From positions 62,001-126,000 of IMG/VR virus record IMGVR_UViG_3300009184_000029: a stretch of DNA of 64,000 nucleotides; one strand, given 5' to 3'. The translations under genes were made by a program, and so were the position numbers. Shown one piece after another: positions 36,191-64,000 of the stretch. Under the pieces are notes generated by a model. The model made no database searches. It had not been told where the DNA came from and saw nothing but the letters and a program-made list of their open reading frames with translations. How positions within the stretch are numbered: position 1 is the first letter of the stretch; every line of letters starts with the position of its first letter.

Positions 36191-36197
36191 AATTTTA

Positions 36198-36830: not shown

Positions 36831-36835
36831 TGTTT

Positions 36836-37540: not shown

Positions 37541-37546
37541 ATTAAA

Positions 37547-39525: not shown

Positions 39526-39548
39526 ATTAAAATATATGTAATTCGTAG

Positions 39549-41016: not shown

Positions 41017-41017
41017 A

Positions 41018-48691: not shown

Positions 48692-50899
48692 ATGGCTCAA
48701 CAGAATATAAACCAATATAATTTTAAAAAATGGTACATCAAACCTATACAAAATACGTTTGATATATCGTTAGCTTCAGATGAGATTGATTACCAAGAAG
48801 AGGTGTTATTTTCAAATAAAATAATATCAAGTTCTGACGGTAATAAATTACCAATTTATTTTGATTTAAACTCATATTACAGTAGTCAAAAACTACAATT
48901 AAATTACGGAGAGTTTAAGAGTGGTAACACCTTAATATCTATTAATTATTATAACCCAAATGGGGATAATTTAAATTGTTATTCCTCAACAACTTTATGT
49001 GATATTGGATTAACAGGTATTGATAACGGACTTGTAGATAGTATGTCTGGACAATCGATAAGTTATATGATGGGGTTGTTACCTTTAACTGAACAATTTA
49101 AAAGAGACAAATTCGATAGAAGATTAAAATTATCACAAATTACAGGATATACTTCTTTACCAAATATTAGATTTTCCGCAAATACTGCAACGACATTATA
49201 TGATGTTGTATCTAAATCATCAAGTAGTATTGGTTATTATAATCAATTATATGGTGGATTTTATCAGGGATTTTATAAATTATTTGGATATGATTATGAG
49301 GTTTTTCCTGAAAGAACAAATAAAGGATGGTCTGTTGAGATGTTACTTAGACCAAGACAAGAGTCTCAGTATTCTCCAAATGAGGACCAAACAACATTAA
49401 ATCAGGTTTATCCTTATAATAAAAATACTTTCTTTTATTTTGGGTCAAGAGCTGAAAATAAATTTTATCATTATGCATCAGGTTCACCATCTTCAGATAG
49501 TGGATATACAAGAGTTACTGAAAGTTTAGTTGATTTAAAAACTTGTGCTTGTTCAAACACAGGAGTTACAAATTCGAGATGTATTAATGTATACGAACCT
49601 GTAACTTATGAACCGCAATATAACACAAATTGTTCTTGTTGCGGAACCACAGAAGTTGCTCGTCCTGAAAAAGACCCATTATTTGACAGTATGTCAAATT
49701 CATTATCTTTTAGATTATCAGGAGACCCAGCAAATCCAAAAATATGTGTTAAAGTTTTAAAATTCACAGGTGATTGTTCAGTAACAGGTACTTGTCCAAA
49801 TACAGGAATAACATATACCACAGGATACACGATTACTGAATATTGTTCGACTAAAACAATATATGAATATTGTGAGGTTGAGAATCCTTTATATTTGAAT
49901 AAGGAACACTGGTTCCATTTAACTGCGGTTTGGAGTAGAAACGCTTATTTTGATAAGTGTGATTTAGTATATAAAGGAGGGTTAGGTACAATATCTAAAG
50001 AATATTTTGCGGATAGTTTATCTAATGATACGGTGTTATTAATTGAACCTCCAATAACCTCAGGTCAAAAAGTTGCAGAAAAAGTTGAGATAGTTAATTT
50101 AAATGAAGAATGGTTAATACAAAAAGATAGTAGATTAGGTGCATTAAAATTATATGTTAATGGTGAATTATTTTACGTTATAAATGGATTTGAGGAGGTA
50201 ATACCAAGAGGACTTAATACTGAAAAGGAAAAACAACTTGGAGTACCTTTTAACATATCTTGGGGAGGAGGGACTCAAGGACTTAGGGAGAACCTTACAT
50301 TTTCAGGTGTCAATTCTTCAATTTATATCCAAGACCCTGAATTATTTCCAAATAGTACTTTATCAGCGTCTACATTATCAGGGATAACAACTAATATATT
50401 AATCGAAGAAAATTTTGGTGGTAGTTTTGATGGAGCAATTTCACAATTTAGAATGTATAGTGAACCTCTTAACTATCCTGAAATTATTCACAATTTTGAG
50501 ATATTAAAAAATAAATTTAATCTTTTTGATTACAGATGTCCTGATTGTAATGATGACTTGGTTAATGATATTACAAGTTCAGTTAGTGACTTAGGATTTA
50601 TTTCATTCTCATCTAATACATTTTCAGCATTAACGTATACGTTGTATTTCATACCTGAAGATGAAGTAAATAGAATTACAATATCTGAAGAAACATCAAT
50701 ACCGACATTTCCATCATCTTACGATATAACACAACCACCAATATCCCCATTTTTAGGGGCTGGCGACTATTATTTTTATTTTGACTTAATAGACCAAACA
50801 CTAAAAGTTACAAATCCAACAAACTACTTTGGTGAAGCAATCTTAATCGGTGGTGATTTTTATTTAGTTGACGGAAATGGGGATTACATTATAATTTAA
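48692..50899 (+). CDS. virion protein with LamG/concanavalin-like domain
   Basis: WFHLTAVW, LKLYVNGEL, FDGAISQFRMYSEPL; Cys-rich inserts. Confidence 0.65.
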   Translation: MAQQNINQYNFKKWYIKPIQNTFDISLASDEIDYQEEVLFSNKIISSSDGNKLPIYFDLNSYYSSQKLQLNYGEFKSGNTLISINYYNPNGDNLNCYSSTTLCDIGLTGIDNGLVDSMSGQSISYMMGLLPLTEQFKRDKFDRRLKLSQITGYTSLPNIRFSANTATTLYDVVSKSSSSIGYYNQLYGGFYQGFYKLFGYDYEVFPERTNKGWSVEMLLRPRQESQYSPNEDQTTLNQVYPYNKNTFFYFGSRAENKFYHYASGSPSSDSGYTRVTESLVDLKTCACSNTGVTNSRCINVYEPVTYEPQYNTNCSCCGTTEVARPEKDPLFDSMSNSLSFRLSGDPANPKICVKVLKFTGDCSVTGTCPNTGITYTTGYTITEYCSTKTIYEYCEVENPLYLNKEHWFHLTAVWSRNAYFDKCDLVYKGGLGTISKEYFADSLSNDTVLLIEPPITSGQKVAEKVEIVNLNEEWLIQKDSRLGALKLYVNGELFYVINGFEEVIPRGLNTEKEKQLGVPFNISWGGGTQGLRENLTFSGVNSSIYIQDPELFPNSTLSASTLSGITTNILIEENFGGSFDGAISQFRMYSEPLNYPEIIHNFEILKNKFNLFDYRCPDCNDDLVNDITSSVSDLGFISFSSNTFSALTYTLYFIPEDEVNRITISEETSIPTFPSSYDITQPPISPFLGAGDYYFYFDLIDQTLKVTNPTNYFGEAILIGGDFYLVDGNGDYIII

Positions 50900-50914: not shown

Positions 50915-53900
50915 ATGGCACAAGGAAAAACAATAACACAATTACCCTTAATATTAAGTGCGGATAGTTCGTCTAGCACAATTATCGTAAAAGATGGAGT
51001 TACAAGTCAAATACAGTACTCGGCTTTAACAGTTAGTCCTGAAGTATTTCAGACTACAGTTGATTCTAAACTTGGTTTAACAGGAGGTACAGTTGACGGA
51101 CAGGTACAAATAGTATCATCTTTAAGTTCTGAAGTACCGGGACAATCTTCACAATTACTACCAACAACAGGATGGACATCAAATGGATGGACTGGTAATT
51201 TTACAACAGGATTTACTCATACAACAGGTAATACTACAACATTAGTAAGTACATATTCAGCAAGTCCTGCTACAACATATGTACTTAAATACGATATAAT
51301 ACCCACAAACACAACATATGATATATATTTTGGACAAAATGGAGAGTATTTAAATACTAGTTTAAACGTTACAAATACAGTCGGATGCTCAAGTAATAAA
51401 GAAGTAAACGCTGGATTTATATGTTACGATGGTTTCCAAGTAAAATATTTTATTACTAATGATGCCAAATCAGGTACTCAATGTATTAATGGAAATTGTC
51501 CAAAAGGATTTAAATGTGAAGGTGGGGAATGTGTTGTTGATTTAGATTCGGGCGTGTGGTCTGAAAAATATGTTGGGTATGATTGTGCAAAAGTTGTTGC
51601 AAGTCCTTGTACATACGCAACTGCAGTTAATATAGGATGTCATACTTGTTGTAATGCGAGACCAATACCTGTAATATGTGACGGACAACAACAAATTATT
51701 GGATACGTTAATGAGTGTGCATTATACGGACCTTCTAAAAGTACAACATACTCAGGTCCAAATGGTATAATATATACCGAATTACTTGAGGAATTTATTG
51801 ATAATATAACTTTTAATGACACATTTAGAGGACGTATAAATTACGGTTCTTCTTGTGACGGTAACGCCGATTGCGGACCGGGTTATGTTTGTCTAAACGG
51901 ATATTGTGTTAGACAAATTATAACATCATCAATGATTTCAGGATTAGAATGTGCTTCAAGTACTTATTGTCCACAAGGATTTACATGTAATAATGGTAAT
52001 TGTGAACCTGATTTAGCATCAGGATTTTGGATTGAAATTGGAGAAAAACCGGGAGGATATCCAATATACCAAGGACCAGGTGGAGTTGAACTTCACACAG
52101 GATGGGATGAAGGGGAAGGATATGCATTATATGAAAATCCAAATAGTTATGTTGGAGAATATAGACAAACTTGTTCAATAAATAACGATTGTCCAAAAGG
52201 TTTTATATGTGTTGATGGATATTGTGTTAAATTAATACAAACATCAAACTTGTTCAATGGAATGAGTAACAAAGGGGTTTGTGGATGTCCAACAGGATAT
52301 AAAACCAATCCTGTTTATCCATATACAGCAACAACATCTTGTTTTGCGGATTTAGAAAGTGGTTATTGGACAAATGTTGGCACAAGTTCAAATAACGCAA
52401 ATGGAACAGTAACAATAAGTTTTGGTGGAATATCTGCAACAACAAATACTTCAGGAAGTATTGGAGTTTATGCTAAAGATTATTCACCATTAAGAGTCAC
52501 TCCGACCAGTAATTTTGACGGTTTATTATTGACGTACTTGAGAGAAGTTACGGGAACAACAACGTCAACATTTACATTGTCTGATGGAAACTCCGCAAAT
52601 GTTACACAACTTAGAGGTGGTACCGCAAATTTATATAATAATTTTATAGGTGTTGATTCAGGTAATCAAAATATAAGTGGACAAAGAAATTTATCTTTAG
52701 GACAAAACACATTAACAAGTAATGTTAGTGGAAGTAAAAACGTATCAATTGGAGTTGATAGTTTAAAATCAATAGTTGCGTCTGATTCTAATATTGCAAT
52801 CGGTGACTCGGCATTATTAAATAATGGATATGGTTCCAATAACGTCGCAATAGGTACAAATTCAATGTTGGTGGATAAAGACCCTAATTGTTCAGTGGCA
52901 ATAGGGGATAATTCATTAGCAAATAACTCAGAAATTGATGGTAATGTTGCAATAGGATGTTCTGCAGGTGAAAAAAGTAATGTACCAAACACTGTTTATA
53001 TTGGAGCAAGGTCAGGACTTATTGATTTGGGAGAAGGGTCAACATTTGTTGGTTATGAAAGTGGTTTAAATAACATAGGAAATTATAACACTTTTTTAGG
53101 TAATTTAGCCGGATATAGTAATACATCGGGAGACAATCTAACATTTATAGGATATAATTCGGGATTAAATAATACTTCGGGGTCTGAAAATACATTTATC
53201 GGTTCTGAATCAGGAGTTTATAATCAAGACGGAATTCGTAATGTTGCTATAGGTTCTTATGCCGGGGCATTTACATTGGATGGGGTTACTGAAAACACGT
53301 CACCAAACCGTTCGGTTTATATTGGTAGTAATACAAAATCATTTAATGTTAATGATACAAATTCAATAGTAATTGGTTTTGGAGCTGAAAGTCAGGGTGA
53401 TAATACTGTTGTTATTGGTAATGACAATACTGAAACAATATATTTAAATGGTGATTTAAATGTTACCGGAGCAGACTCAACATCATTTAATGTTAATGAC
53501 TTTGGAATAAATTCAACTGATGTAATAACATTAGTCACCGATTCTTTATCTATTCAAGATAGTCAGGGTGACGGTTATCATTTAACAACAAATAGTGGTC
53601 AAAATGGTCAAGTTTTAACATATACTAACGGAAATGCCATTTGGCAAAACACATCTGGAGATGGAAATGTTACAGGCTCAGGCACTTTAAATTATATACC
53701 AAAATGGTCAGGTTCAACTGGGTTACGTAATAGTGTAATTTTTGATAATGGTTCATTTGTCAGTGTCGGATATAACAATTTACTTACTTCATTTATAGTA
53801 TCCGCAAACACATTTAACATAGGAAAAGGTGGTAGCACTTCATCAAGAGCATTATTCATGGGAAAATCAATCCCATCAACATGGCTAGGTTCAGATAGTT

Positions 53901-55045
53901 GTGGTCAGTTTGATTTTAACAATCCTGGTGGTGACCAAGGAGTTGTTATTAGAACAAATGCGGGATATGTTGGCACCGGAGGAACACCTGTTGCAGGAGG
54001 AATTATTTCAGTTCAGGGTAATGCTAAAGGTTTAATATTTGCGGGTAATCCTATAGAGGAAAACCATTTAGTTATTGATAGTTTTGGTAAAGTTGGTATT
54101 GGTACAAATATACCAGTTTCTAAATTAGACGTTAGTGTTACGGCAAATACTATCGGTGTGAGAATATCAGGTAATAGTGACTCAGAGATGTTAAGAATTA
54201 CACAGACAGGTAATGGGAACGCATTTGTGGTCGAAGATTCCTCAAATCCTGACTCAACTCCATTTGTTATAACATCGGGAGGTACTGTGGGTATTGGTAT
54301 TGATTCACCATTACATGGATATAAATTACATGTCAGGGACGGAGCTGCAACAAATAGTATTGGAATTAGCGGTACAATGTCCGTATTTGAAAGTACTGGA
54401 AATACATATGTGAGTATTTTAAGTCCAAATGCAAATACCTCAGGTATTGCATTTGGTACTGATGAGTTACGTAGTGCGTCCTATCTTAGATGGAGTTACA
54501 CTAATAACCAAATGTCTTTATCTACTAATAGAACGGGGGCAACTTTATCTTTTTCTACCGATAACGAACAGCAGAGAATGTTAATAACATCAGGAGGAAG
54601 TGTGGGTATCGGAACTTCATCACCATCAACAACTTTACATGTTTCGGCAAGTACAAACCCTGTTAGATTTGAAGGTTTACAAACAAACACAGGAGCAACT
54701 AAAACAGTAATTGCAGATAATAACGGAGTTCTTTATACTGAAACCAAACCTAAAAAATATGTTGCGTTATTAACACAAACAGGTACAAGTGCTCCAACCG
54801 CGATTGTTTTAGAAAATACATTAGGTAATATCACATTTAGTTATTTTCAAACTGGCAAATATACAGTAACCGCAACTGGATTGTTAACATTAAATAAAAC
54901 AACAGTTATTACAGGAGGAGCGGTTTGTGCTATAGATACATTAACTGCGAATGGGTTTAATTTATCATCATACAGTATGCCACCAGTTGCTAACGCTAAT
55001 GGAATACTGAATAACTCAACTATTGAGATTAGCGTTTATCCGTAA
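50915..55045 (+). CDS. long tail fibre / adhesin with Cys-rich repeats and YadA-head-like repeats
   Basis: Gly/Thr/Asn-rich; N..IG..S repeats at about 52640-53450; VGIGT motifs; C-terminal KKYVALLTQTGTSAP domain. Confidence 0.82.
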   Translation: MAQGKTITQLPLILSADSSSSTIIVKDGVTSQIQYSALTVSPEVFQTTVDSKLGLTGGTVDGQVQIVSSLSSEVPGQSSQLLPTTGWTSNGWTGNFTTGFTHTTGNTTTLVSTYSASPATTYVLKYDIIPTNTTYDIYFGQNGEYLNTSLNVTNTVGCSSNKEVNAGFICYDGFQVKYFITNDAKSGTQCINGNCPKGFKCEGGECVVDLDSGVWSEKYVGYDCAKVVASPCTYATAVNIGCHTCCNARPIPVICDGQQQIIGYVNECALYGPSKSTTYSGPNGIIYTELLEEFIDNITFNDTFRGRINYGSSCDGNADCGPGYVCLNGYCVRQIITSSMISGLECASSTYCPQGFTCNNGNCEPDLASGFWIEIGEKPGGYPIYQGPGGVELHTGWDEGEGYALYENPNSYVGEYRQTCSINNDCPKGFICVDGYCVKLIQTSNLFNGMSNKGVCGCPTGYKTNPVYPYTATTSCFADLESGYWTNVGTSSNNANGTVTISFGGISATTNTSGSIGVYAKDYSPLRVTPTSNFDGLLLTYLREVTGTTTSTFTLSDGNSANVTQLRGGTANLYNNFIGVDSGNQNISGQRNLSLGQNTLTSNVSGSKNVSIGVDSLKSIVASDSNIAIGDSALLNNGYGSNNVAIGTNSMLVDKDPNCSVAIGDNSLANNSEIDGNVAIGCSAGEKSNVPNTVYIGARSGLIDLGEGSTFVGYESGLNNIGNYNTFLGNLAGYSNTSGDNLTFIGYNSGLNNTSGSENTFIGSESGVYNQDGIRNVAIGSYAGAFTLDGVTENTSPNRSVYIGSNTKSFNVNDTNSIVIGFGAESQGDNTVVIGNDNTETIYLNGDLNVTGADSTSFNVNDFGINSTDVITLVTDSLSIQDSQGDGYHLTTNSGQNGQVLTYTNGNAIWQNTSGDGNVTGSGTLNYIPKWSGSTGLRNSVIFDNGSFVSVGYNNLLTSFIVSANTFNIGKGGSTSSRALFMGKSIPSTWLGSDSCGQFDFNNPGGDQGVVIRTNAGYVGTGGTPVAGGIISVQGNAKGLIFAGNPIEENHLVIDSFGKVGIGTNIPVSKLDVSVTANTIGVRISGNSDSEMLRITQTGNGNAFVVEDSSNPDSTPFVITSGGTVGIGIDSPLHGYKLHVRDGAATNSIGISGTMSVFESTGNTYVSILSPNANTSGIAFGTDELRSASYLRWSYTNNQMSLSTNRTGATLSFSTDNEQQRMLITSGGSVGIGTSSPSTTLHVSASTNPVRFEGLQTNTGATKTVIADNNGVLYTETKPKKYVALLTQTGTSAPTAIVLENTLGNITFSYFQTGKYTVTATGLLTLNKTTVITGGAVCAIDTLTANGFNLSSYSMPPVANANGILNNSTIEISVYP
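51482..52370 (+). repeat. protein-level C-x4/5-C-x5-C-x4-C repeats (4 full plus 1 variant)
   Basis: CINGNCPKGFKCEGGEC; CDGNADCGPGYVCLNGYC; CASSTYCPQGFTCNNGNC; CSINNDCPKGFICVDGYC. Confidence 0.88.
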
Positions 55046-55098: not shown

Positions 55099-56343
55099 AT
55101 GAAAATTTTTATACAAGTCGCGTCTTATCGTGACCCTCAGTTATTACCTACAATTAATTCTGCGATAGAAAATGCAAAAAAACCAAATAATTTGGTATTT
55201 GGAATCGCTAGACAATTTAAAGAAGACGATGGTTTTGATAACTTAGATGAGTATTCTAAAGATAAAAGATTTAGAATTTTAAACATACCATATAATGAAT
55301 CAAAGGGTGCGTGTTGGGCTAGAAATCAAATCCAACAATTACATAAGGGTGAAAAATATACATTACAGATTGATTCTCATATGAGATTCGCCCCTAATTG
55401 GGACGAAGAAATGATAAAAATGGTTAAATCTTTACAAAAAAAAGGTCACAAAAAACCATTATTAACGGGATATGTTTCATCATTTGACCCTGAAAATGAC
55501 CCTGAAAGTAGAGTTAAAGAACCATGGAGAATGGTTTTTGATAGGTTTATTCCTGAAGGGGCTGTATTCTTTTTACCCGAAACAATACCAAATTACCAAG
55601 ATTTAACTGAACCAATTCCCGCTAGATTTTATTCTGCACATTTTTGTTTTACATTAGGGGAGTTTGCAAAAGAGGTCCAACACGACCCTGAATTTTATTT
55701 TCATGGTGAAGAAATCTCAATATCTGCTAGAGCATATACCCATGGTTATGACTTATTTCACCCTCATAAAACATTAATTTGGCACGAATATACTAGAAAA
55801 GGTAGGACAAAACAGTGGGATGATGACGGTAAATGGGTTGAAAAAAATAACCATTGTCATAAAAAGAATAGGTCTTTATTTGGAATGGATGATGAAAATG
55901 AAATGGAACATGGGATTTATGGGTTTGGAAAAGATAGAAGTTTAAGGGATTATGAAAAATATTCAGGGTTACTTTTTTCAAAAAGAGCGGTACAACAATA
56001 TACATTAGATAAGAATTATCCTCCAAATCCTTATAATTTTGATAATGAAGACGATTGGTTAAATTCATTCTCATCAATATTCAAGCATTGTATAGACGTA
56101 CAATATTCAAGTGTACCTGAAAGAGATTATGATTTTTGGGCAGTTGCATTTCATGGTGATAATGATGATACAATATATCGTAAAGATTGTGATGAAAGAG
56201 AGATTCAATCTTTCTTTAGAGACCCTGATGGGTATTGTAAAATATGGAGAGAATTCCCAACTCTAACTAAACCAAAATATTGGGTAGTTTGGCCACATTC
56301 TAAATCAAAAGGATGGGGTGAAAGATTAACAGGTAATTTATAA
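55099..56343 (+). CDS. GT60-type polypeptide/hydroxyproline alpha-GlcNAc transferase-like
   Basis: IFIQVASYRD, GACWAR, LQIDSHMRF..NWD, GEEI..SARAYTHGYD.FHP, WHEYTR. Confidence 0.85.
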   Translation: MKIFIQVASYRDPQLLPTINSAIENAKKPNNLVFGIARQFKEDDGFDNLDEYSKDKRFRILNIPYNESKGACWARNQIQQLHKGEKYTLQIDSHMRFAPNWDEEMIKMVKSLQKKGHKKPLLTGYVSSFDPENDPESRVKEPWRMVFDRFIPEGAVFFLPETIPNYQDLTEPIPARFYSAHFCFTLGEFAKEVQHDPEFYFHGEEISISARAYTHGYDLFHPHKTLIWHEYTRKGRTKQWDDDGKWVEKNNHCHKKNRSLFGMDDENEMEHGIYGFGKDRSLRDYEKYSGLLFSKRAVQQYTLDKNYPPNPYNFDNEDDWLNSFSSIFKHCIDVQYSSVPERDYDFWAVAFHGDNDDTIYRKDCDEREIQSFFRDPDGYCKIWREFPTLTKPKYWVVWPHSKSKGWGERLTGNL

Positions 56344-56347
56344 TTTT

Positions 56348-57067
56348 ATGAAAAAAGTAATATGTTTTAGTTTATGGGGTAATGATTATAGGTATTTGGG
56401 GGGTGCGTTACAAAATGTGGAACTTGCCAAATATTATTATCCTGATTGGATTTGCAGATTTTATCTTGGTAAATCAACAAATGAAAAATTTAAAAATATT
56501 TTAAAAGGTTTTGATAATGTTGAAATAATTGAAATGGATGAGGATGGTGATTGGAGAGGAATGTTTTGGAGATTCTTTGCTGCTTCAGATGATTCAGTTG
56601 ATGTTATGATGTCAAGAGATGCTGATAGTAGAATACATAAAAGAGAAGTCGAAGCGGTTAAAGAATGGTTAAATTCGGATAAACAATTTCATATCATGAG
56701 AGACCACCAATATCATAGTGTACCATTACTTGGTGGAATGTGGGGAGTTAAGAAAGGAGTTTTAAATGGTATTGTCGATGAAATAAAAGAATACAATGGA
56801 GGTGACTTTTGGCAAGTTGACCAAAATTTCCTTAGAGAGAAAATTTTTGATAAAGTAGTTAATGATTCTTTTGTACACGATGAAATGCATAGATATGTTG
56901 TTGATTCAAATAGATATCCAAATACTACAAGAAATCCAAGTCATTTTGTGGGTCAAGCATATAATGGTGATGGGAAGATATTAGATGCTCCTGAACATTT
57001 TAATGATTTTCTTTTCGAATTAGAAAATTTTAAATTAAAAATTTATGAGGAGTCAGAATTAAAATGA
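56348..57067 (+). CDS. putative GT-A-like protein (FSLWG / RDADSR family)
   Basis: CFSLWG, MFWRF, SRDADSR, HIMRDH, LLGGMWG. Confidence 0.55.
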   Translation: MKKVICFSLWGNDYRYLGGALQNVELAKYYYPDWICRFYLGKSTNEKFKNILKGFDNVEIIEMDEDGDWRGMFWRFFAASDDSVDVMMSRDADSRIHKREVEAVKEWLNSDKQFHIMRDHQYHSVPLLGGMWGVKKGVLNGIVDEIKEYNGGDFWQVDQNFLREKIFDKVVNDSFVHDEMHRYVVDSNRYPNTTRNPSHFVGQAYNGDGKILDAPEHFNDFLFELENFKLKIYEESELK

Positions 57068-58008
57068 TAAAAATTAAATTAGAGTGCTGGTGGACTAATT
57101 CTTCAACACTTAAAGATAGATTCATTAAACAGTTTGTCCCAAACTCAGACCTTTCATTATATGAGTTTGTTGATAACAATCCTGATTTTACAATAGTTTT
57201 TGGTAAAACTGAGTTTGATAAAATTGAGACTCCAAAAAGTAGAACTTTTTATATATCTCAAGAACCATTATGGTCACCAAATGAAAAAAGAGATGTTTGG
57301 GATTATTGTTCAAAAATATTAATATCTGACAAGTCAATATTTGAAAATAGAGAAGAATACATTGAAATTTTATTACCGATGTTTTATGCGGGTCATGGTG
57401 AATATCATGAAGATAAAAACTATGACTGGGGTATGTTTTTAAAGGATGAAAAATTTAATAAGACAAAATCAACATCAGTTATTGTTAGAAAAGACTATGC
57501 TAGTTATTGGGACCATTTAGAAATTAAAGACGTTTCAAAAATTATATATAAATTAAGAACTGATTTAGGTGTTAAATTATCTGAAAATAAAGAAATAGAT
57601 ATATTTGGAACTCATTGGGAAAACAATGGTGAAAATATATTTGGGGCGGCTTGGAACAAAAGAGTTGCTCTCAATGAATATAGATTTTCTTTCTGTTCTG
57701 AAAATTCAATACAAAAAAACTATATAAGTGAAAAATTTTGGGATTCGGTTCTTGTTAATACTGTACCAATTTATTTAGGGTGTTCAAATATTGATGAATA
57801 TATCCCTAACGATTATTATATTAATTTAAATCAATACGGGGATGATATTGATGTTATGTATGATTTAATATCAGATATTACAAAAAATTCAGATACTCTT
57901 TATAAGATATACGAACCAAAAATCAAAGAATTAAAAAATATGTTTTTCACTGACCAAAGGTTTAATTTATGGATAAAAATTAAAAATTTAATACATGGTA
58001 TCAATTAG
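57064..58008 (+). CDS. glycosyltransferase family 10 (alpha-1,3-fucosyltransferase-like)
   Basis: YRFSFCSENS...NYISEKFWDS......PIYLG. Confidence 0.88.
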   Translation: MIKIKLECWWTNSSTLKDRFIKQFVPNSDLSLYEFVDNNPDFTIVFGKTEFDKIETPKSRTFYISQEPLWSPNEKRDVWDYCSKILISDKSIFENREEYIEILLPMFYAGHGEYHEDKNYDWGMFLKDEKFNKTKSTSVIVRKDYASYWDHLEIKDVSKIIYKLRTDLGVKLSENKEIDIFGTHWENNGENIFGAAWNKRVALNEYRFSFCSENSIQKNYISEKFWDSVLVNTVPIYLGCSNIDEYIPNDYYINLNQYGDDIDVMYDLISDITKNSDTLYKIYEPKIKELKNMFFTDQRFNLWIKIKNLIHGIN

Positions 58009-58708
58009 TTTAAATATGAAGTTTTGGGATGACGGAAAGGAGGATTCAACAAGAGTTAGAAACGTCTTATTTTCGTGGGGGGAATTAAAAAAATTATCAT
58101 CATTTCTTTTTGAGAATGGTGTGTTACCTAAATCAACCCTTTATGATTTTTCAGAAAAAAGAATTATCCCTGACTCAACACACATACCATATCCTTTAGG
58201 CGTTTATAAAAAGGCAGAAAAAACAAACATAATTTTAAACCAACGAGTTGGGTATGATTTTTTTATGATGATTGATTGTGACGCTTTTTTTCACGAGGAT
58301 GATTATCCAAAATTATTAGATGTTATATTAAATTTAAAAAAAGGAGACGTGATTACTTTTGATTTGGCTAAATTACACAATAATGTTTCTGATTATTTAA
58401 TTGACAATAAATTTATTAAAGATAAATCAGATTGGGATTTTGCATATTCTGGTGATAAATCTAATGGTCCATTAAATGGAAGAATTGGTGGGTTAGGTGG
58501 TGTCTATATTTGTGATACTGATTTACTACGAAACTTAGGGGGATTTGACTCTAAATTTGAGACGTGGGGTGGTGAAGATGGAGAAATGATGGATAGAATT
58601 TTAACATCAGATATGGTAAAAAATGTAATTCCTATTAGAGATTTTTTCCCATTTCATTTACCACATTTTATCGATTGGGGTAATAAAAATTACAACAAAA
58701 ACGCATGA
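57995..58708 (+). CDS. GT7/GT2-type glycosyltransferase
   Basis: MIDCDAF (DxD), LGGFDSKFETWGGED. Confidence 0.82.
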   Translation: MVSISLNMKFWDDGKEDSTRVRNVLFSWGELKKLSSFLFENGVLPKSTLYDFSEKRIIPDSTHIPYPLGVYKKAEKTNIILNQRVGYDFFMMIDCDAFFHEDDYPKLLDVILNLKKGDVITFDLAKLHNNVSDYLIDNKFIKDKSDWDFAYSGDKSNGPLNGRIGGLGGVYICDTDLLRNLGGFDSKFETWGGEDGEMMDRILTSDMVKNVIPIRDFFPFHLPHFIDWGNKNYNKNA

Positions 58709-59580
58709 AAAAAATTAAGTTTATAACCGCAATATATAATGACCTTTTTGGTAGTGAATTTGGGGGTAGGATTAACCGACAACATCACTATAAATGGAGT
58801 TTGATTTCATTATTAAGAATGACAGACGCCGATTTTGTATGTTATACATCAAAAAGAGAACTTGATGATTTACGTAGTTTCTTCTATGAAAAGAATAACA
58901 TACCAGAAAGTCAACTTAAATTTATTGAGTTTGAATTATCAGATAAAAAAAATTTCAGTTTTATTGATGAATATAAAAATATTGAGGAAATTCGCAAATC
59001 AGACAGATGTTATGAAATACAATACAATAAGTTTTTTTGGTTCTTAAATGAGGATTTGTCTTATGAATATTATTATTGGTTAGATGCAGGATTGTCTCAT
59101 TGTGGGTTATTACCTGATAAGTACTTAACGTATTGTGATGAATATAGAGGATATTATGATTCTTATTTTTTTGATAATAATTTTTTAAATAATCTATTAG
59201 AAAAAACAAAAGAAAACATAGTTGTATTTTCAAAGGACAACCATAGAAATTTTTGGAGTGGAACAGTTCCACCTCAATATTATAATGAATACGATTCTTC
59301 AGTTCATATTATTGGTGGGTTATTTGGTGGTAAAAAAGAAAATATGAAGTGGTTTGTTGACGAATTTGATAAGATGTTAAATCTAATAACCAACGAACAA
59401 AAAAAGATATATAGTGAAGAACAAATAATGTCATTAATTTATCAAAACAATAAAAGTAAATTTAAAACATTTGATTTTGATGTATGGTGGCATGAGACAA
59501 ATGGCCCCAAAGGACTACCTGAAGATTTTTTTGTAGTTAATAAAAGTTTTTATAAATCATTAGAAGACGTTAATATATGA
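58705..59580 (+). CDS. HtrL/WlaTC-like protein
   Basis: YEIQYNKF.FL, YWLDAG, IIGGLFGG, EEQIMS. Confidence 0.75.
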   Translation: MKKIKFITAIYNDLFGSEFGGRINRQHHYKWSLISLLRMTDADFVCYTSKRELDDLRSFFYEKNNIPESQLKFIEFELSDKKNFSFIDEYKNIEEIRKSDRCYEIQYNKFFWFLNEDLSYEYYYWLDAGLSHCGLLPDKYLTYCDEYRGYYDSYFFDNNFLNNLLEKTKENIVVFSKDNHRNFWSGTVPPQYYNEYDSSVHIIGGLFGGKKENMKWFVDEFDKMLNLITNEQKKIYSEEQIMSLIYQNNKSKFKTFDFDVWWHETNGPKGLPEDFFVVNKSFYKSLEDVNI

Positions 59581-61256
59581 GTTTTACTTTAGTTACTGGT
59601 TTATGGGATATTGGAAGAGGAGAACTTAATGAAGGATGGTCAAGAAGTTTTAATCACTACTTAGATAAATTTGAGGAGTTATTAAAAATAGAAGAAAATT
59701 TAATAATTTTTGGAGATTCAGAGTTAGAAAAATTTGTAAGTGAAAGAAGAAATCCAAAAAATACTCAATTTATAATTAGAAATTTAGATTGGTTTAAAAA
59801 TAACGATTACTATGAAAAAATTCAAAATATAAGAAATAGTTCGGAGTGGAAACATCAATCAGGATGGTTAAAGGATTCCACTCAAAGTAGGTTAGAAATG
59901 TATAACCCTTTGGTTATGTCAAAAATGTTTTTATTAAATGACGCTAGAATTTTTGACAAGTTTAACTCTCAATTTTTATTTTGGATTGATGCAGGTATTA
60001 CCAACACAATCCATCCTGGATATTTTACTCACGATAAAGTATTTGATAAATTACCTAAAGAAATTAAAAAGTTTACATTTGTTTGTTTCCCATATAATGC
60101 GTCCAATGAAATTCACGGATTTGAATATCCTGAAATAAATAAATGGGCGGAAGGTAATGTTAAAAAAGTTGCCAGAGGAGGATTTTTTGGAGGTCCTAAA
60201 GAAACTATATCTGAAATAAACTCACAGTATTATAACTATTTAATTAACACATTAAGTGAGGGATTAATGGGAACTGAAGAGTCAATATTCTCAATAATGG
60301 TATATTCCAAATCAGAATTAATTGATTATTACGAAATCGAAGAGAATGGACTGATGGGTAAGTTTTTTGAGGACATTAAGGAAAATAGTTTGGATAAAAA
60401 AAGTGAATATAAACCAAAATCAACGTACCTTACAAAATACGATAAGAATAATGTCGGTTTATATGTAATAACTTTTAATAGTCCAAATCAATTTAAAACT
60501 TTAATTAATTCAATGTTAGAATATGATTCGGACTTTGTTAATTCCCCAAAAAGAAAAATATTATTAAATAACTCTACCGATTTATCGACCACGGATGAAT
60601 ATGTTAGATTGTGTGAAGAATTTGGATTTGAACACATAAAAAAAGATAACATAGGTATTACAGGTGGAAGACAATTCATTGCGGAACACTTCAATGAAAC
60701 TGAATTAGATTACATGTTCTTTTTTGAGGATGATATGTTTTTTTATAATAAAAAGGGGGAAGTTTGTAATAATGGATTTAACAGATATACCCCAAATTTA
60801 TATAAAAAATCTTTAAGTATTATTCATGAAGAAGATTTTGATTTTTTAAAATTAAATTTCACCGAATTTTATGGTGATAATTCAACACAGTGGAGTTGGT
60901 ATAATGTACCCCAAAATTTTAGAGAAACTCATTGGCCTAAAAACAAAAAATTACCTGTACAAGGATTAGACAAGAATGCTCCAAGAACAAAGTTTAATGA
61001 AATAAAATCATATAATGGATTACCATATGCTTCAGGGGAAGTATACATATGTAATTGGCCGATTCTCCTATCAAAAGAAGGTAGTTATAAATGTTATGTC
61101 GAAACAAAATATGCAAGTCCATTTGAACAAACAATAATGTCTCACAATTACCAAGAGATGGTTAAAGGTAATTTAAACCCAGGATTACTATTAATTACTC
61201 CTACTGAACATAATAGATTTGAACATTATGAATCAAGTTTAAGGAAAGAATGTTAA
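59577..61256 (+). CDS. HtrL/WlaTC-like domain fused to GT-A-like domain
   Basis: TLVTGLWDIGR, YNPLVMSK, FWIDAG, RGGFFGG, TEESIFS; C-terminal YVITFNSP and FFEDDMF. Confidence 0.78.
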   Translation: MSFTLVTGLWDIGRGELNEGWSRSFNHYLDKFEELLKIEENLIIFGDSELEKFVSERRNPKNTQFIIRNLDWFKNNDYYEKIQNIRNSSEWKHQSGWLKDSTQSRLEMYNPLVMSKMFLLNDARIFDKFNSQFLFWIDAGITNTIHPGYFTHDKVFDKLPKEIKKFTFVCFPYNASNEIHGFEYPEINKWAEGNVKKVARGGFFGGPKETISEINSQYYNYLINTLSEGLMGTEESIFSIMVYSKSELIDYYEIEENGLMGKFFEDIKENSLDKKSEYKPKSTYLTKYDKNNVGLYVITFNSPNQFKTLINSMLEYDSDFVNSPKRKILLNNSTDLSTTDEYVRLCEEFGFEHIKKDNIGITGGRQFIAEHFNETELDYMFFFEDDMFFYNKKGEVCNNGFNRYTPNLYKKSLSIIHEEDFDFLKLNFTEFYGDNSTQWSWYNVPQNFRETHWPKNKKLPVQGLDKNAPRTKFNEIKSYNGLPYASGEVYICNWPILLSKEGSYKCYVETKYASPFEQTIMSHNYQEMVKGNLNPGLLLITPTEHNRFEHYESSLRKEC

Positions 61257-61282: not shown

Positions 61283-61651
61283 ATGGAGTTTACTATTGCA
61301 AAAAATTCTAATTTACCTGTTTTAAAAATGCAACTTGTTAATGATGGTATAACTGACCCGTCAAAATTTAGTTCATTTATTGAAAATTCTTTGATTTATT
61401 TTTCTATGAAGGACTCTAGTAACGGGTCGTATAAGATTCAAAGTGCTCCTGCAGGATTTGTTAATAAAACATTTGTTAATCCTGATGCAACACCTGAATA
61501 TTATATTTTTTACAAATTTACAAAAACGAATACAAATAAATCGGGAATTTATGAAGGTGAGTTCAAATTTATAAATGATGAAGGTACCACAATTTTACCG
61601 ATAAGAGAAAAATTAATAATAAAAGTTATTGATAGTTATGTTTATTTTTAA
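61283..61651 (+). CDS. BppU-N-like baseplate/tail adaptor domain protein
   Basis: F.I.KNS.LP.L...L, G.YEGEF, ILPI...L.I.V.DS. Confidence 0.6.
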   Translation: MEFTIAKNSNLPVLKMQLVNDGITDPSKFSSFIENSLIYFSMKDSSNGSYKIQSAPAGFVNKTFVNPDATPEYYIFYKFTKTNTNKSGIYEGEFKFINDEGTTILPIREKLIIKVIDSYVYF

Positions 61652-61653: not shown

Positions 61654-62655
61654 ATGGAATGGTTTATTAAAAAAAATTCAACACAACCTATTTTACAACT
61701 TGAGTTTTCTCTCAATGGTAGGAGTGATTTTAATAAGAATGAAAATTTAACAAATTTCCCATCTGTTTATATATCTTTTTTAGATGTTAATAAGGGGAAA
61801 TATTTATCAACTTCAAAAACGTGTTACATAACAAAAAGTGGGTTAACCACAAATCCTACCGTTGAGAAGTATTATGTTAATTATCAATTTACGAATAAAG
61901 AAACTAAAAATATTGGTAGATATGAAGCTCAATTATCTATGATAGGTACTGACGGTACAAATATACTACCAATATCTGAAAAATTATATATTAATGTGAT
62001 TGATAGTTTTTCAGCTGATTATTATGGGTTTGATACAAATTATAAATTAGAAAGACCTTGTTGTAATGGTAAAGGAATTACTCCCGAACCTGAACCTGAA
62101 CCATTACCCGACGCTTTATTATTTATTGAGCCGGTTTCAAAATCTTCTTTTGTTTCAAATTATATGGTATCTCAGGGAGTGAATTTTTACGGTTTTAATT
62201 ATGGAATACCTCCAACATCTGATGATGATATTTTAAACTATATGGAAATGTATGCCAATTATGGTGACGATAATAATTTACCAATAGTTATACGACAAAC
62301 AATACCCCAAACTAATGGAGGTTATGATGATTTTAACAATCCTATAACAAAATATAATTTTTTAACAACCGAGATTGATTTAGGAACAATAAATGAAGAC
62401 GCTTGGTATACTTGGGTTATACCCATGGATTCTTTAGGAGGAGGTAAACAAACTAAAATATCTTATAGTACATCATCCCCAAATGACCTATTAACTGAAA
62501 ATATGAACAATCTAATATATCAATACGATGTTGTTTATAATGGTGTGAGCTTTAATTCGGGAAAATATTCAGTTTATACAACTTTTCAAAGTCATAATTT
62601 TAGGTTGAATAATAATAATAGATATATTTATTTTAAAGGTCATACTGTAGAATAA
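61654..62655 (+). CDS. BppU-N-like paralogue with PEPEP linker and C-terminal domain
   Basis: N-terminus parallels the previous ORF (WFIKKNSTQPIL, GRYEAQL, ILPISEKLYINVIDS). Confidence 0.6.
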   Translation: MEWFIKKNSTQPILQLEFSLNGRSDFNKNENLTNFPSVYISFLDVNKGKYLSTSKTCYITKSGLTTNPTVEKYYVNYQFTNKETKNIGRYEAQLSMIGTDGTNILPISEKLYINVIDSFSADYYGFDTNYKLERPCCNGKGITPEPEPEPLPDALLFIEPVSKSSFVSNYMVSQGVNFYGFNYGIPPTSDDDILNYMEMYANYGDDNNLPIVIRQTIPQTNGGYDDFNNPITKYNFLTTEIDLGTINEDAWYTWVIPMDSLGGGKQTKISYSTSSPNDLLTENMNNLIYQYDVVYNGVSFNSGKYSVYTTFQSHNFRLNNNNRYIYFKGHTVE

Positions 62656-62656: not shown

Positions 62657-64000
62657 ATGAGTTTCAATTATAAAAATCCATTATCATCAACACAATTAGA
62701 CGGTACTAATTCGGTATCAAGAACATCAGTTTTTGGTACAAATTTTTCGGTTTTACAGACTGGTGGTTATATGGAAATATACCATTTAAGTGGTCTAACA
62801 TTTACAATACCTAACGGAAGTACAGGTTTAACTGAATATAGTGGTAATACAATACCTATTCAGTTTACTGTTTCAAATAATGTTAATGTACCAAATGTAC
62901 TAACATTAAATTCTGATAATATATCTTCAGGGAGACAAAGGTTGGGAATGTTGGTTTATGTTTATGAAAACAATACAACCTATCAATTAAGAATTCCTAA
63001 TTATGATGAATTATTTACTAGTGCAGTTACTACCAATGACGTTACCCAAACACAATTTGGTACTGCTGTAACTTATTCAGGACAAGGTGGGGTATCATTA
63101 ATTAACGCTTGGACGGCGAACACTATTGATGGTGTTGGTGGATATACAAAGGATGATGCTAAATGGGTAGTATATGTTGGGGATGGTGGAGGCGCGTCTT
63201 TAGTGAGTGGAACCACATCAGCAGGTACGGGTTCAACAACCGCAATCACTTTAAATTTAGTTGAGAATAATGGCACGAGTGGAATTACTGTAGATTTATC
63301 TAATGCGTTAACCTACATAAATCCTGACCCTGTTAAAAAAACTGTTGGAGGTATAGAAATACCTAACGCACCATTTGTTAGTGGGATGACTTTTCAACAA
63401 ATAATTGATGAGATTTTTTATCCTAAATTACCTCCCACAATTTTATTTAATAGATTTAATAGTTTTTTAATTGGTGGGACCGGACTTTTTGATACAAACC
63501 AAGTTTATGAAGTGGGCACGATTGGTGGGGTACAAATGACCGCAGGAATTATTCAAGGACAATCAACGGCAACTGGACAACCAATAAAATATATGGGTTT
63601 ACCAAACACATATACATTTACAGGAAACGGATTTACAACACAAACATTTAGTACTGCCGATTTAAGTAGAGCAACAACAGAAGTAAGCTATACAGGTTCG
63701 GTAGGTACAAACACATTTTACGTTAAAGTTGATTATAATTCAGGTGACATTCCTGTTTATGATGATGGTAGTCCATATAATAATGCCACATTTATTAATG
63801 CTGGTAGCATTTCAACAACAACAAGTTTTAATTGTAACTATCCATTTTTTGCAAATACTTTAGATATAACAGACTCTGACGGAACAAAATTAACATTAGC
63901 GGCAAGCACTGTATCTGAATACGTTTTTGAATACTTTCAAACAGAAATTAACGACCCAACAGGATTTGGAGTTTTTAAAAATTATATTGATATTGCCCAA
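62657..64000 (+). CDS. tail fibre/structural protein, 3'-truncated by window edge
   Basis: Manual translation MSFNYKNPLSSTQLDGTNSVSRTSVFG...RQRLGMLVYVYENNTTYQL; Thr/Gly-rich; no stop noticed while reading to the end. Confidence 0.72.
   Translation, partial: MSFNYKNPLSSTQLDGTNSVSRTSVFGTNFSVLQTGGYMEIYHLSGLTFTIPNGSTGLTEYSGNTIPIQFTVSNNVNVPNVLTLNSDNISSGRQRLGMLVYVYENNTTYQLRIPNYDELFTSAVTTNDVTQTQFGTAVTYSGQGGVSLINAWTANTIDGVGGYTKDDAKWVVYVGDGGGASLVSGTTSAGTGSTTAITLNLVENNGTSGITVDLSNALTYINPDPVKKTVGGIEIPNAPFVSGMTFQQIIDEIFYPKLPPTILFNRFNSFLIGGTGLFDTNQVYEVGTIGGVQMTAGIIQGQSTATGQPIKYMGLPNTYTFTGNGFTTQTFSTADLSRATTEVSYTGSVGTNTFYVKVDYNSGDIPVYDDGSPYNNATFINAGSISTTTSFNCNYPFFANTLDITDSDGTKLTLAASTVSEYVFEYFQTEINDPTGFGVFKNYIDIAQ

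Follow-up and report, generated by a model that had tools for sequence, protein, structure and literature searches.

A six-gene glycosyltransferase cassette in the tail-fibre gene block of a large freshwater T4-like phage and its putative role in virion protein O-glycosylation

A large freshwater T4-like phage carries six translationally coupled genes for soluble glycosyltransferases within its tail-fibre gene block. With moderate confidence, and in the absence of any measured glycan, acceptor or enzyme activity for members of this clade, we consider them most likely to constitute a cytoplasmic pathway which puts O-linked sugar chains on the phage's own fibre or baseplate proteins. What is new here is the arrangement of the locus in related phages, where conserved first and last genes enclose a swappable middle, the occurrence of the same terminal pair in many bacterial phyla, the recurrent neighbourhood of Thr-Pro-rich proteins, and the similarity of the predicted GT60 fold to mucin-type polypeptide GalNAc-transferases. 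The window analysed is a stretch of 64,000 nucleotides (positions 62,001 to 126,000 of IMG/VR record IMGVR_UViG_3300009184_000029), and the relevant features are as follows.

25554..46035 (-), second, larger glycosylation island, inferred to supply sugar donors and further transferases
48692..50899 (+), fibre-like protein (735 aa) with an N-terminal part conserved at the start of the fibre block in relatives
50915..55045 (+), large fibre or tail-spike-like protein (1376 aa), candidate glycan acceptor in this phage
55099..56343 (+), ORF1, GT60-family, GT27-like retaining GT-A glycosyltransferase with a C-terminal beta domain, proposed priming polypeptide O-glycosyltransferase and conserved 5' bookend
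56348..57067 (+), ORF2, GT-A-like putative hexosyltransferase (239 aa), variable-middle gene
57064..58008 (+), ORF3, GT10-type putative fucosyltransferase (314 aa), variable-middle gene
57995..58708 (+), ORF4, GT2/GT7C-type inverting GT-A glycosyltransferase (237 aa), variable-middle gene
58705..59580 (+), ORF5, remote HtrL/WlaTC-like glycosyltransferase (291 aa), commonest middle family
59577..61256 (+), ORF6, two-domain glycosyltransferase with an N-terminal HtrL domain and a C-terminal GT-A domain, conserved 3' bookend
61283..61651 (+), BppU_N-like baseplate or fibre-anchor domain protein (122 aa)
61654..62655 (+), protein with a BppU_N-like N-terminal domain, a (Pro-Glu)n linker and a variable C-terminal domain (333 aa)
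62657..64000 (+), first of a run of paralogous Ser/Thr-rich fibre-like genes, running off the window

The spacings between the six cassette ORFs are 4, -4, -14, -4 and -4 nt, so four junctions overlap. In a Pfam search ORF1 matched PF11397 (GlcNAc, the GT60 family) with E 5.7e-70 (237 bits against a cut-off of 21), ORF3 matched PF00852 (GT10 C-terminal domain) with E 2.4e-14 (53.8 bits against a cut-off of 23.9), ORF4 matched PF02709 (Glyco_transf_7C) with E 2.3e-9, although over only 41 residues (167-207), and ORF6 matched PF09612 (HtrL_YibB) with E 4.9e-19 on residues 2-251. ORF1 also matches phrog_24687 (E 3e-168) and shows about 79% identity across hundreds of metagenome clusters. ORF2 has no Pfam or PHROG hit. 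It does contain CFSLWG and RDADSR (DxD) motifs, and the protein atlas places it among GT-A-like viral hexosyltransferase clusters (0.99); the structure of the nearest cluster, not of this protein, superposes on GT2 N-domains at TM 0.93. An ENS...Y.SEK motif is present in ORF3, while ORF4 has DCD and WGGEDGE motifs. ORF5 also lacks a Pfam hit, but matches HtrL-domain proteins both by BLAST (E 4e-4) and in the atlas (feature score 0.97, TM 0.68-0.74 to HtrL families). The cassette is not an assembly artefact, as contigs from four other sequencing runs cover it at 99% identity or better, and a 294-kb contig carries all six genes at 94-99% amino-acid identity.

The AlphaFold model of the ORF1 product (pLDDT 94.8) is closest in fold to mucin-type polypeptide GalNAc-transferases: its top 25 PDB matches are polypeptide GalNAc-transferases T1/T2/T4 (ppGalNAc-T2/T4/T1 being the best, E 1e-10) and PGANT9, at E 1e-10 to 4e-9, aligned over about 440 columns including the C-terminal domain. 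D92-x-H94 and H229 are invariant. The 559-aa ORF6 product is modelled as two GT-A-type domains (pLDDT 89.7), and its best fold matches are the protein-directed two-domain enzymes LH3, mimivirus R699, LARGE1 and COLGALT1; E384-D385-D386 are invariant and a DNS motif is conserved in its C-terminal half. No hydrophobic segment was found in any of the six proteins. Within the 64-kb window there is no multi-pass membrane ORF typical of a flippase or polymerase, the one ORF with hydrophobic segments having three.

The cassette is flanked by fibre-like and BppU_N-like genes. The 1376-aa upstream protein is rich in Ser+Thr (22%) and Gly (12.6%) and hits PHROG tail-spike (E 4e-23) and virion-structural (E 2e-17) families. 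It is only 76% identical, with indels, to the copy in the related locus L006, while the cassette genes are 94-99% identical. Homologues of the 735-aa protein, which has a weak LamG hit, open the + strand block in many viral loci at 45-65% identity. The two genes downstream of the cassette share a 120-aa N-terminal domain (residues 1-119 of the 333-aa protein are 36% identical to the 122-aa protein), which looks BppU_N-like only in the atlas (TM 0.74/0.81), not by Pfam. The C-terminal part of the 333-aa protein is 36% identical to a separate 181-aa gene of another related locus, L002. The gene running off the window is 91% identical to the 513-aa gene of locus L173, which is followed by five further fibre-like genes (657, 544, 471, 509 and 499 aa), mostly paralogous, with 19-28% Ser+Thr.

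In 74 of 80 related viral contigs from IMG/VR the GT60 gene and the HtrL fusion are conserved bookends located on the fibre-gene strand, and a BppU_N-like homologue, free-standing or fused, follows the cassette in nearly all viral loci. Seeding the search from the BppU_N-like gene instead recovered GT60 within 10 kb in 64/80 loci, nearly all of the rest being cut short on the upstream side. Between the bookends lie 1-11 variable genes, representing 41 families in 31 arrangements and coding mostly for sugar-building enzymes. The ORF5 family occurs in 59 of 77 loci, including ORF332 of the cultured Xanthomonas phage XacN1 (29% identity), whereas the families of ORF2, ORF3 and ORF4 occur in 7, 8 and 5 of 77 loci, respectively, the last one always together with GT10. 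In co-occurring populations, summed contig depth over GT60 is about 5-7 times that over the middle genes. XacN1 has the same core genes, namely GT60 (47%), the HtrL-like gene (29%) and the fusion (41%), and is reported to have at least two virion glycoproteins (PMC5852040). However, in XacN1 the cassette lies beside DNA polymerase and RNase H genes, not tail genes.

Candidate acceptors are suggested by the same set of loci. Thr-Pro-rich, mucin-like tracts (median about 71 aa) occur in fibre-like ORFs of 74/80 loci; 140 of 141 such genes are on the cassette strand and no tract is in the transferases, while the 6 loci without tracts are short. The phage under study and its 94% relative, however, have no Thr-Pro tract in the 64-kb window or in about 10 kb further on; the best Ser/Thr/Pro 25-mer reaches only 0.6, so the proposed acceptor type is missing in the visible sequence of this phage. 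Its 333-aa protein has a PEPEPEP linker, whereas the related L002 411-aa protein has a Thr-Pro tract about 170 residues in. Thr-Pro linkers could also simply be common in these phages; no GT60-free sister group was available as a control. Co-expression of the cassette with fibre genes is not shown either: a promoter-like TATTTAT motif is located 14 nt upstream of the 735-aa protein gene, within 90 nt of 24/28 related genes of this type and upstream of the BppU_N-like gene in all 70 relatives (mostly 11-22 nt from the start), but upstream of GT60 in only 16/78 relatives, and some relatives have a terminator-like hairpin there.

The GT60 and fusion genes are also adjacent in about 30 of 80 bacterial genome loci from many phyla. 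In 12-13 loci the pair lies with PqqD, a peptide-binding protein, and a roughly 300-aa P-loop protein. In Tepidamorphus an 87-aa protein with a Ser/Pro/Thr-rich tail, conserved in 5 loci, is encoded just upstream. In Sphingobacterium the GT60 homologue sits in a RiPP cluster with a GG-leader precursor, a radical SAM enzyme and a C39-ABC exporter. In T6SS clusters of Ralstonia and a Neisseriaceae strain it lies beside baseplate genes, and spike-like proteins whose N-termini, in our reading, look like VgrG carry (Thr-Pro)n or Pro-rich repeats in 5 loci.

Taken as a pathway, the GT60-family enzyme is inferred to use a DxH...H metal site to put a first sugar, probably a HexNAc, on Ser/Thr of a fibre protein before or during tail assembly. 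The conserved HtrL + GT-A enzyme and the HtrL-like enzyme are inferred to add a conserved inner part of the glycan, and the genes in the middle to build a strain-specific outer part, so that swapping them changes the glycan from phage to phage. Here these are the GT-A-like enzyme, the GT10 putative fucosyltransferase and the GT2/GT7C-type enzyme, while elsewhere they include GT25, GT11-like and GT2 enzymes, sugar methyltransferases, an aminotransferase and UDP-galactopyranose mutase. Donor sugars such as GDP-6-deoxyhexoses may come from the second island, where Pfam and PHROG hits include GDP-mannose 4,6-dehydratase (29034-30008, E 3e-117), GT17, two GT11, GT92/GT2_4, DUF5672, DUF3431, a methyltransferase, several GT2, GT2_5 and a DegT protein closest to RfbH (38221-39525, NCBIfam E 1e-107; RfbH/ColD-like), although the functional link to the cassette is an inference. 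Possible benefits are stiffening or protease protection of fibre linkers, shielding, or adhesion.

The sequence-only reading had proposed a priming-plus-extension pathway for protein O-glycans, probably acting on the virion, which is supported as the best explanation but not proven. Its description of the cassette as eukaryote-type is not supported, as the GT60-like family is widespread in bacteria and phages (4584 clusters at 50% identity, 561 genome stretches). Priming on hydroxyproline is not supported either, since no 2OG/prolyl hydroxylase was found in any window ORF scanned. The same is true of a Lewis-type glycan: the GT7 assignment rests on a 41-residue motif that GT2, GT7 and GT27 share, and the GT10 + GT7C pair is only one of 31 interchangeable arrangements.

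Other roles appear less likely. The enzymes might rebuild or decorate the host's LPS, capsule or surface glycans during infection, for example to block superinfection or to stop progeny sticking to lysed cells, as proposed for the "LPS gene" islands of T4-like cyanophages. HtrL/WlaTC and GT25 are indeed best known from LPS and lipo-oligosaccharide core loci, the second island of more than 15 sugar genes resembles the cell-wall-modification gene sets of cyanomyoviruses S-SCSM2R and P-SSM2 (PMC12801897), and one bacterial homologue lies near capsule or EPS genes (Wzi, Bac_transf, GT1). Nevertheless, we regard this as unlikely: none of the six proteins has a membrane segment, no initiating phosphoglycosyl transferase, flippase or polymerase is present in the window, the fold and family of the GT60 enzyme point to polypeptide acceptors, the cassette is fixed inside the fibre block while the other island sits among early-type genes, and bacterial homologues associate with peptide-binding proteins, precursor-like peptides and spike proteins.

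The bacterial neighbourhoods with PqqD, a P-loop protein, small Ser/Pro/Thr-rich proteins and a RiPP cluster could instead suggest that the target is a small phage or host peptide or protein, such as a secreted or regulatory product, rather than the tail. This seems doubtful, as the phage loci contain no PqqD or P-loop partner, no small Ser/Thr/Pro-rich ORF is seen in the window, and the lineage-wide linkage is to fibre and baseplate genes that carry the Thr-Pro tracts. Least likely is the addition of sugars to modified bases of the phage DNA to evade restriction, as in T-even phages and other phages with glycan-modified DNA. The genome is T4-like (Gp23, Gp20, TerL), the C-terminal part of the fusion protein has a weak PHROG hit to beta-glucosyl-HMC alpha-glucosyltransferase (E 0.0014, 53 residues), a dCTP deaminase/dUTPase-like gene is present in the window, and the location of the XacN1 cassette would also fit. 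However, no dCMP or dUMP hydroxymethylase-like ORF is present in the window, fucosyltransferase-type and polypeptide-transferase-type enzymes are not those known for DNA, and the position in the fibre block and the links to Thr-Pro tracts and peptide-binding proteins are left unexplained by this reading.

The 64-kb window is part of a large T4-like phage from freshwater metagenomes, with a GC content of about 28%. It encodes a Gp23-type major capsid protein, a Gp20 portal, a T4-type large terminase, a prohead protease and PhoH. The same DNA is found mainly in freshwater runs, with a few marine and estuary ones. The GT60 protein occurs on contigs of up to 229 kb, and close homologues on contigs of up to 294 kb. 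The nearest isolates by capsid protein, Microcystis phage Mel-JY01 and Flavobacterium 'immuto' phages, are only 42-46% identical. Megablast of the cassette found no DNA-level relatives among sequenced phages, and only four jumbo phages carry the GT60 gene at protein level. The best cellular matches to the GT60 gene (58-67%) are in Saprospiraceae, Lewinellaceae and Cytophagaceae assemblies, which hints at a Bacteroidota host, though some of those contigs may be mis-binned phage. Membership of the window in the 'moraphage' lineage was not established; the respective paper only notes glycosyltransferases among its core genes (PMC12619734).

The cassette and the downstream gene discussed below are located as follows:
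55099-61256, + strand: six ORFs of the glycosyltransferase cassette (ORF1-ORF6)
61654-62655, + strand: gene with a BppU_N-like domain followed by a PEPEPEP linker (residues about 140-155)

The six ORFs occupy exactly the region proposed by the sequence-only reading, and four of the five junctions overlap by 4-14 nt. ORF2 has no profile hit, but it contains the FSLWG and RDADSR motifs and is GT-A-like in the protein atlas. ORF3 has a GT10 C-terminal catalytic domain (PF00852, E 2.4e-14, 53.8 bits against a cut-off of 23.9) and contains ENS followed by Y-I-SEK, matching the ENS...Y.(T/S)EK motif that appears to be conserved in the family; the N-terminal GT10 domain was not detected. ORF4 matches only PF02709, on residues 167-207 (E 2.3e-9), with a weak GT2_2 hit in addition; its DxD and WGGEDxE motifs are shared by GT2, GT7 and GT27. 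None of the six proteins has a hydrophobic segment.

Upstream of the cassette lie a 735-aa fibre-like protein and a 1376-aa protein, the latter being 22% Ser+Thr and hitting tail-spike and virion-structural PHROGs. Downstream are two genes that share a BppU_N-like domain. The resemblance to BppU_N is not supported by Pfam (no hit at E below 0.1) and comes from the atlas, with a feature score of 0.96 to a cluster partly annotated BppU_N; the structure of the nearest cluster, not of this protein, superposes on a BppU family at TM 0.74/0.81. In the 94% relative, the block continues with six more fibre-like genes, mostly paralogous, and then DNA polymerase B and gp13.

ORF1 matches the GT60 family profile PF11397 well above the curated threshold (E 5.7e-70, 237 bits against a cut-off of 21, residues 55-292). 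Neither phmmer nor a 22-sequence profile retrieved a PDB relative; only the fold search was informative. The predicted model is confident (pLDDT 94.8), and its best solved-structure matches are GT27 mucin-type polypeptide GalNAc-transferases, aligned across the catalytic domain and the extra C-terminal domain (E 1e-10, TM about 0.5, 10-18% identity). D92-S93-H94 and H229 are invariant in 22 diverse homologues, as would be expected for the DxH...H metal site of retaining GT27/GT60 enzymes. The family is not peculiar to eukaryotes: there are 4584 clusters at 50% identity, 561 confirmed stretches in bacterial genomes from many phyla, and fold relatives in uncultured tailed phages and giant viruses. 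Very large proteins of 1300-2460 aa contain 3-4 tandem GT60-like stretches (representative proteins P0122, P0123, P0125 and P0131).

ORF6 has an N-terminal HtrL domain (PF09612, residues 2-251, E 4.9e-19, 69 bits against 24). It is far below the NCBIfam YibB equivalog cut-off (73 against 265 bits), so it is a family member, not an orthologue. An alignment of ORF6 homologues shows a second domain with a conserved DNS motif and an invariant EDD motif. The AlphaFold model (pLDDT 89.7) has two GT-A-type domains in tandem, and its best PDB matches are the two-domain protein-directed enzymes LH3, mimivirus R699, LARGE1 and COLGALT1. The cassette therefore encodes seven transferase domains. ORF5 has no profile hit and is a remote HtrL relative, supported by BLAST (E 4e-4) and by the atlas (0.97, with TM about 0.7).

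In a contig with a 94% identical GT60, all six genes are kept at 94-99% identity, while the large fibre gene is only 76% identical. In relatives with about 79% identical GT60, the GT60 (79%), the fusion protein encoded by ORF6 (74%) and the 122-aa gene (62%) are kept, and the middle genes are replaced. Across 80 IMG/VR loci, 74 have GT60 and the fusion protein on one strand, separated by 678-7192 bp holding 1-11 genes. Of the other six, three are short loci, one has a middle running more than 10 kb beyond the stored flank, and two have the fusion gene replaced or reduced. The 232 middle proteins from 77 loci fall into 41 families and 31 arrangements, the commonest being a GT25-type enzyme plus the HtrL-like enzyme, while the window's arrangement is unique in this set. 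The middle families include GT25, GT10, GT_PLOD, GT2, weak GT11-, GT8- and GT6-like proteins, two kinds of sugar methyltransferase, a DegT aminotransferase and UDP-galactopyranose mutase. In two public runs (X3 and X4), summed contig depth at 90% likeness or above is about 5-7 times higher over GT60 than over the middle. With the caveats of such a profile, this fits many co-occurring relatives sharing the bookend but not the middle. Joints in public contigs that skip the middle genes have only 20-22 matching letters on one side and were not counted.

The T4-type late promoter TATAAATA is not enriched (15 seen, 18 expected). Its reverse complement, in contrast, appears in a promoter-like motif, (C/G/A)TATTTAT(A/T), which lies 11-32 nt upstream of many structural genes in the coding orientation (13 of its 22 copies in the window, e.g., 6839-6846, 16696-16709, 48678, 50903-50910, 61263). 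Across relatives (loci L090-L169) a TATTTAT copy lies upstream of the BppU_N-like gene in 70/70 loci and of fibA in 24/28, against a background of 0.036 per 90 nt, but upstream of GT60 in only 16/78. We therefore do not claim that the cassette is co-expressed late with the fibres. In two loci (L093, L094) a GC-rich hairpin followed by a T run, terminator-like, lies about 30-60 nt upstream of the GT60 start, suggesting that the cassette is a separate transcription unit from the upstream fibre genes in those phages.

Bacterial relatives provide clues to the acceptor. The full-length fusion protein lies next to the GT60 homologue in about 30 of 80 genome loci, including long contigs of Gemmatimonadaceae, Lewinellaceae, Ectothiorhodospiraceae and Luminiphilus. 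In 12-13 loci the pair comes with a PqqD-like protein and a roughly 300-aa protein carrying a GxSGAGK(S/T) P-loop; the PqqD fold is probably a peptide-recognition element in RiPP pathways. The module, made of a small Ser/Pro/Thr-rich protein, GT60, the P-loop protein, PqqD and the HtrL + GT-A protein, is seen in Tepidamorphus (locus L089, 9670-14587), Gemmatimonadaceae (L087, 6290-12984) and Luminiphilus (L172). In Tepidamorphus the HtrL + GT-A protein is split into two genes, and the small protein just upstream (87 aa) has an RRKLL signal-like motif and a Ser/Pro/Thr-rich tail and recurs in 5 loci. In Gemmatimonadaceae a 726-aa NTP_transf_5 protein contains a region homologous to ORF5 (E 2e-13). 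In Sphingobacterium (L170, 2177-11311) the GT60 homologue sits in a RiPP-type cluster with a 69-aa precursor, which has a GG leader end and a twice-repeated Cys/Thr/Asn-rich core, a radical SAM enzyme and a C39-peptidase ABC exporter; a lanthipeptide dehydratase gene lies 8 kb away.

GT60 homologues are also embedded in type VI secretion clusters, in the order TssE, TssF, TssG, TssA-like, fimbrial-like, GT60 (L254, Ralstonia sp. 25C, 1-21362; L088, Neisseriaceae TC5R-5; loci L030, L050, L070 and L084). The Ralstonia copy lacks the C-terminal domain, and a PAAR gene follows it. In Neisseriaceae the GT60 homologue is followed by a stand-alone copy of the fusion protein's C-terminal GT-A domain (57% identity). 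The neighbouring spike-like proteins, whose N-termini appear to us to be VgrG-like, carry perfect (Thr-Pro)n runs near their C-termini in Ralstonia, Achromobacter and Paraherbaspirillum, and Pro-rich repeats in Trinickia and Paraburkholderia, suggesting glycosylated T6SS spikes. The phage itself encodes a ClpB/ClpV-like AAA+ protein at the window start (2-1432, - strand), which is 37-38% identical to the Clp-type ATPase gene located next to the GT60 homologue in Cupriavidus (L060, L073), probably the T6SS ClpV.

In the 80 IMG/VR loci, 141 ORFs have Thr-Pro-dominated tracts (median about 71 aa, up to about 900). Of these, 140 are on the cassette strand, in the fibre-like genes on both sides of the cassette, and none is a transferase. 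At least one tract is present in 74 loci, and the six without are all short loci with little flank. For comparison, 19 of 966 ORFs in the bacterial loci pass the same filter. In one relative, L002, two upstream fibre genes and the BppU_N-domain gene just downstream all have such tracts. Thr-Pro repeats are presumably typical substrates of mucin-type and GT60 polypeptide transferases. However, seeding from the BppU_N-like gene returned the same lineage, nearly always with the cassette, so these counts lack a GT60-free control group. Moreover, the window's phage and its close relative have no Thr-Pro tract in the visible 64 kb plus about 10 kb. The fibres of the window's phage are Ser/Thr-rich (19-28%) but not mucin-like, and the BppU_N-domain gene of the window has a Pro-Glu linker, whereas the related L002 protein carries a Thr-Pro tract. 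The window-type phage seems to have lost Thr-Pro linkers while keeping the whole cassette, for which we have no explanation.

The most economical reading is cytoplasmic O-glycosylation of fibre or baseplate proteins, in which GT60 primes the glycan, the two HtrL-type enzymes extend it and the interchangeable middle genes finish it. In the absence of direct glycan measurements, we consider this only somewhat more likely than not. The labels 'eukaryote-type', 'hydroxyproline' and 'Lewis-type' attached to the cassette by the sequence-only reading are not supported. No prolyl 4-hydroxylase (2OG-Fe(II) oxygenase), as required by a Skp1-type hydroxyproline pathway, was hit in any window ORF scanned, although only 64 kb of a roughly 229-kb genome is visible; a weak 2OG-FeII_Oxy_3 gene lies near the homologue in one Lewinellaceae genome.

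Against the virion-glycosylation reading, HtrL and GT25 families are better known from LPS cores, one bacterial locus has capsule or EPS genes nearby, and the cassette of the cultured Xanthomonas phage XacN1 is not next to tail genes. Host-envelope remodelling is an unlikely alternative. The membrane-embedded components of seroconversion or O-antigen modification cassettes (GtrA flippase, GtrB, a type-specific Gtr, or Wzx/Wzy and an initiating transferase) were not found: no such Pfam families were detected among the window ORFs scanned, no cassette protein contains a hydrophobic 19-mer, and only one ORF in the window has any. A non-virion peptide or protein target is less likely still. DNA glycosylation of the T-even type is very unlikely, as there is no hydroxymethylase or thymidylate-synthase-like ORF in the window (the rest of the genome was not seen), and the only trace is a weak 53-residue PHROG hit (E 0.0014).

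Phage-encoded virion glycosylation has been shown experimentally only in a few cases, mainly mycobacteriophages, and affects recognition of the phage particle. In mycobacteriophages (Freeman et al., 2023, as cited in PMC12619734 and PMC12801897), phage-encoded glycosyltransferases are likewise proposed or shown to decorate the phage's own structural proteins, and their genes lie within or next to the structural genes. There the glycans are on the C-termini of capsid and tail-tube subunits (PMC12619734), while here the neighbours are fibre and baseplate genes, the proposed priming enzyme is a GT60/GT27-like polypeptide transferase and the locus has conserved bookends around a hypervariable middle.

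XacN1 (ORF334-ORF330), Xoo-sp13 and Stenotrophomonas phages CM1 and RAS14 carry the same core genes, namely GT60, an HtrL-like gene and the HtrL + GT-A fusion (47%, 29% and 41% in XacN1), with inserted genes between them. In XacN1, GT60, a carbamoyltransferase, an HtrL-like gene, a 246-aa gene and the fusion gene lie in a row beside replication genes. Its authors detected at least two glycoproteins among virion proteins and suggested that the phage's own transferases make them, but annotated only ORF334 and ORF328 as glycosyltransferases and did not link the glycoproteins to specific genes (PMC5852040).

The eukaryotic GT60 enzymes (Dictyostelium Gnt1 and pp-alpha-GlcNAc-T, trypanosome mucin GlcNAc-transferases) and GT27 ppGalNAc-transferases share with ORF1 the Pfam family PF11397 (GT60) and a retaining GT-A fold, predicted for ORF1, with an extra C-terminal domain; the candidate acceptors of the phage enzyme, Thr-Pro-rich tracts, are inferred only from the gene neighbourhood. 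The phage enzyme has no signal anchor, so it is cytoplasmic, and the abundance of the clade in bacteria and phages gives no sign of recent eukaryotic origin. Giant-virus machineries (chlorovirus PBCV-1 capsid glycans, mimivirus fibril glycans) also combine virus-encoded, host-independent transferases with GDP-mannose dehydratase-type donor synthesis to decorate virion surface proteins. BFVD fold matches include Megaviridae and Pandoravirus GlcNAc-transferase-like proteins, and mimivirus R699 matches the fusion protein. Those are eukaryotic viruses with different acceptors and enzymes, and the similarity is at fold level only.

Our literature searches for GT60 or PF11397 in phages found nothing relevant. 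What appears to be new is the GT60-led, bookended, hypervariable cassette fixed inside the fibre block of a very abundant lineage, its recurrent neighbourhood of Thr-Pro tracts, and the occurrence of the same enzyme pair in bacterial PqqD/RiPP-like loci and type VI secretion clusters. If the cassette works as proposed, a very abundant lineage of large freshwater phages (the GT60 gene alone has more than 7000 metagenomic homologues) coats its host-recognition apparatus with strain-variable O-glycans. That would add a second, non-protein layer to host-range and adsorption evolution, give a function to the many 'orphan' glycosyltransferases in aquatic phage genomes, and connect phage fibres, type VI secretion spikes and RiPP-like glycopeptides through one enzyme pair. 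More tentatively, and with less than even likelihood, we speculate that tail fibres and baseplate proteins of this lineage and VgrG spikes of some type VI secretion systems carry mucin-like Thr-Pro domains that a dedicated GT60-led pathway O-glycosylates in the cytoplasm, the outer glycan being diversified by swapping transferase genes between the two bookends. This would be a prokaryotic counterpart of mucin-type glycosylation on contractile injection machines, evolutionarily linked to glycosylated RiPP-like peptides in bacteria.

A second, larger sugar-gene island of about 20 genes lies on the minus strand of the window:
25554-46035, - strand: the whole island
29034-30008, - strand: GDP-mannose 4,6-dehydratase
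37547-38233, - strand, and 41018-41698, - strand: two separate ORFs matching the N-terminal half and the C-terminal half of the RmlD/epimerase fold
38221-39525, - strand: DegT-family protein closest to RfbH
46667-47059, - strand: small WYL-domain protein, between the island and the fibre block

The island holds several copies of GT2, a GT1-like gene, GDP-mannose 4,6-dehydratase, GT17, two GT11, DUF3431, a methyltransferase, GT92/GT2_4, DUF5672, a DegT/RfbH-like enzyme, GT2_5 and a PHROG glycosyltransferase; PhoH, a dUTPase/dCTP-deaminase-like gene and a PolB-type exonuclease-like gene also lie in the block. It resembles the sugar-gene islands of the large T4-like aquatic cyanomyoviruses P-SSM2, S-SCSM1 and S-SCSM2R, which have a dozen or more glycosyltransferases (GT2, GT10, GT11, GT25) and nucleotide-sugar enzymes (PMC12801897). 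Those islands are interpreted as host cell-wall modification, and a GT60-led cassette inside the fibre block with Thr-Pro-rich neighbours has not been described there. Together with the cassette, the window has about 25 sugar-related genes in 64 kb, more than the 13 glycosyltransferases called a record for a marine phage (PMC12801897).

The DegT-family protein matches RfbH just below the cut-off (NCBIfam E 1e-107); RfbH is a 3-dehydrase type rather than a plain aminotransferase. Together with GDP-mannose 4,6-dehydratase, this suggests synthesis of a 3,6-dideoxyhexose such as GDP-colitose. The island could supply 6-deoxy or dideoxy sugar donors for the GT10 and GT11 enzymes, although this link is inference only. 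The two RmlD/epimerase-like ORFs lie 2.8 kb apart with three genes between them and could represent a split or a duplicated-and-truncated reductase. The WYL-domain match of the small protein bordering the island has an E-value of 7e-5.
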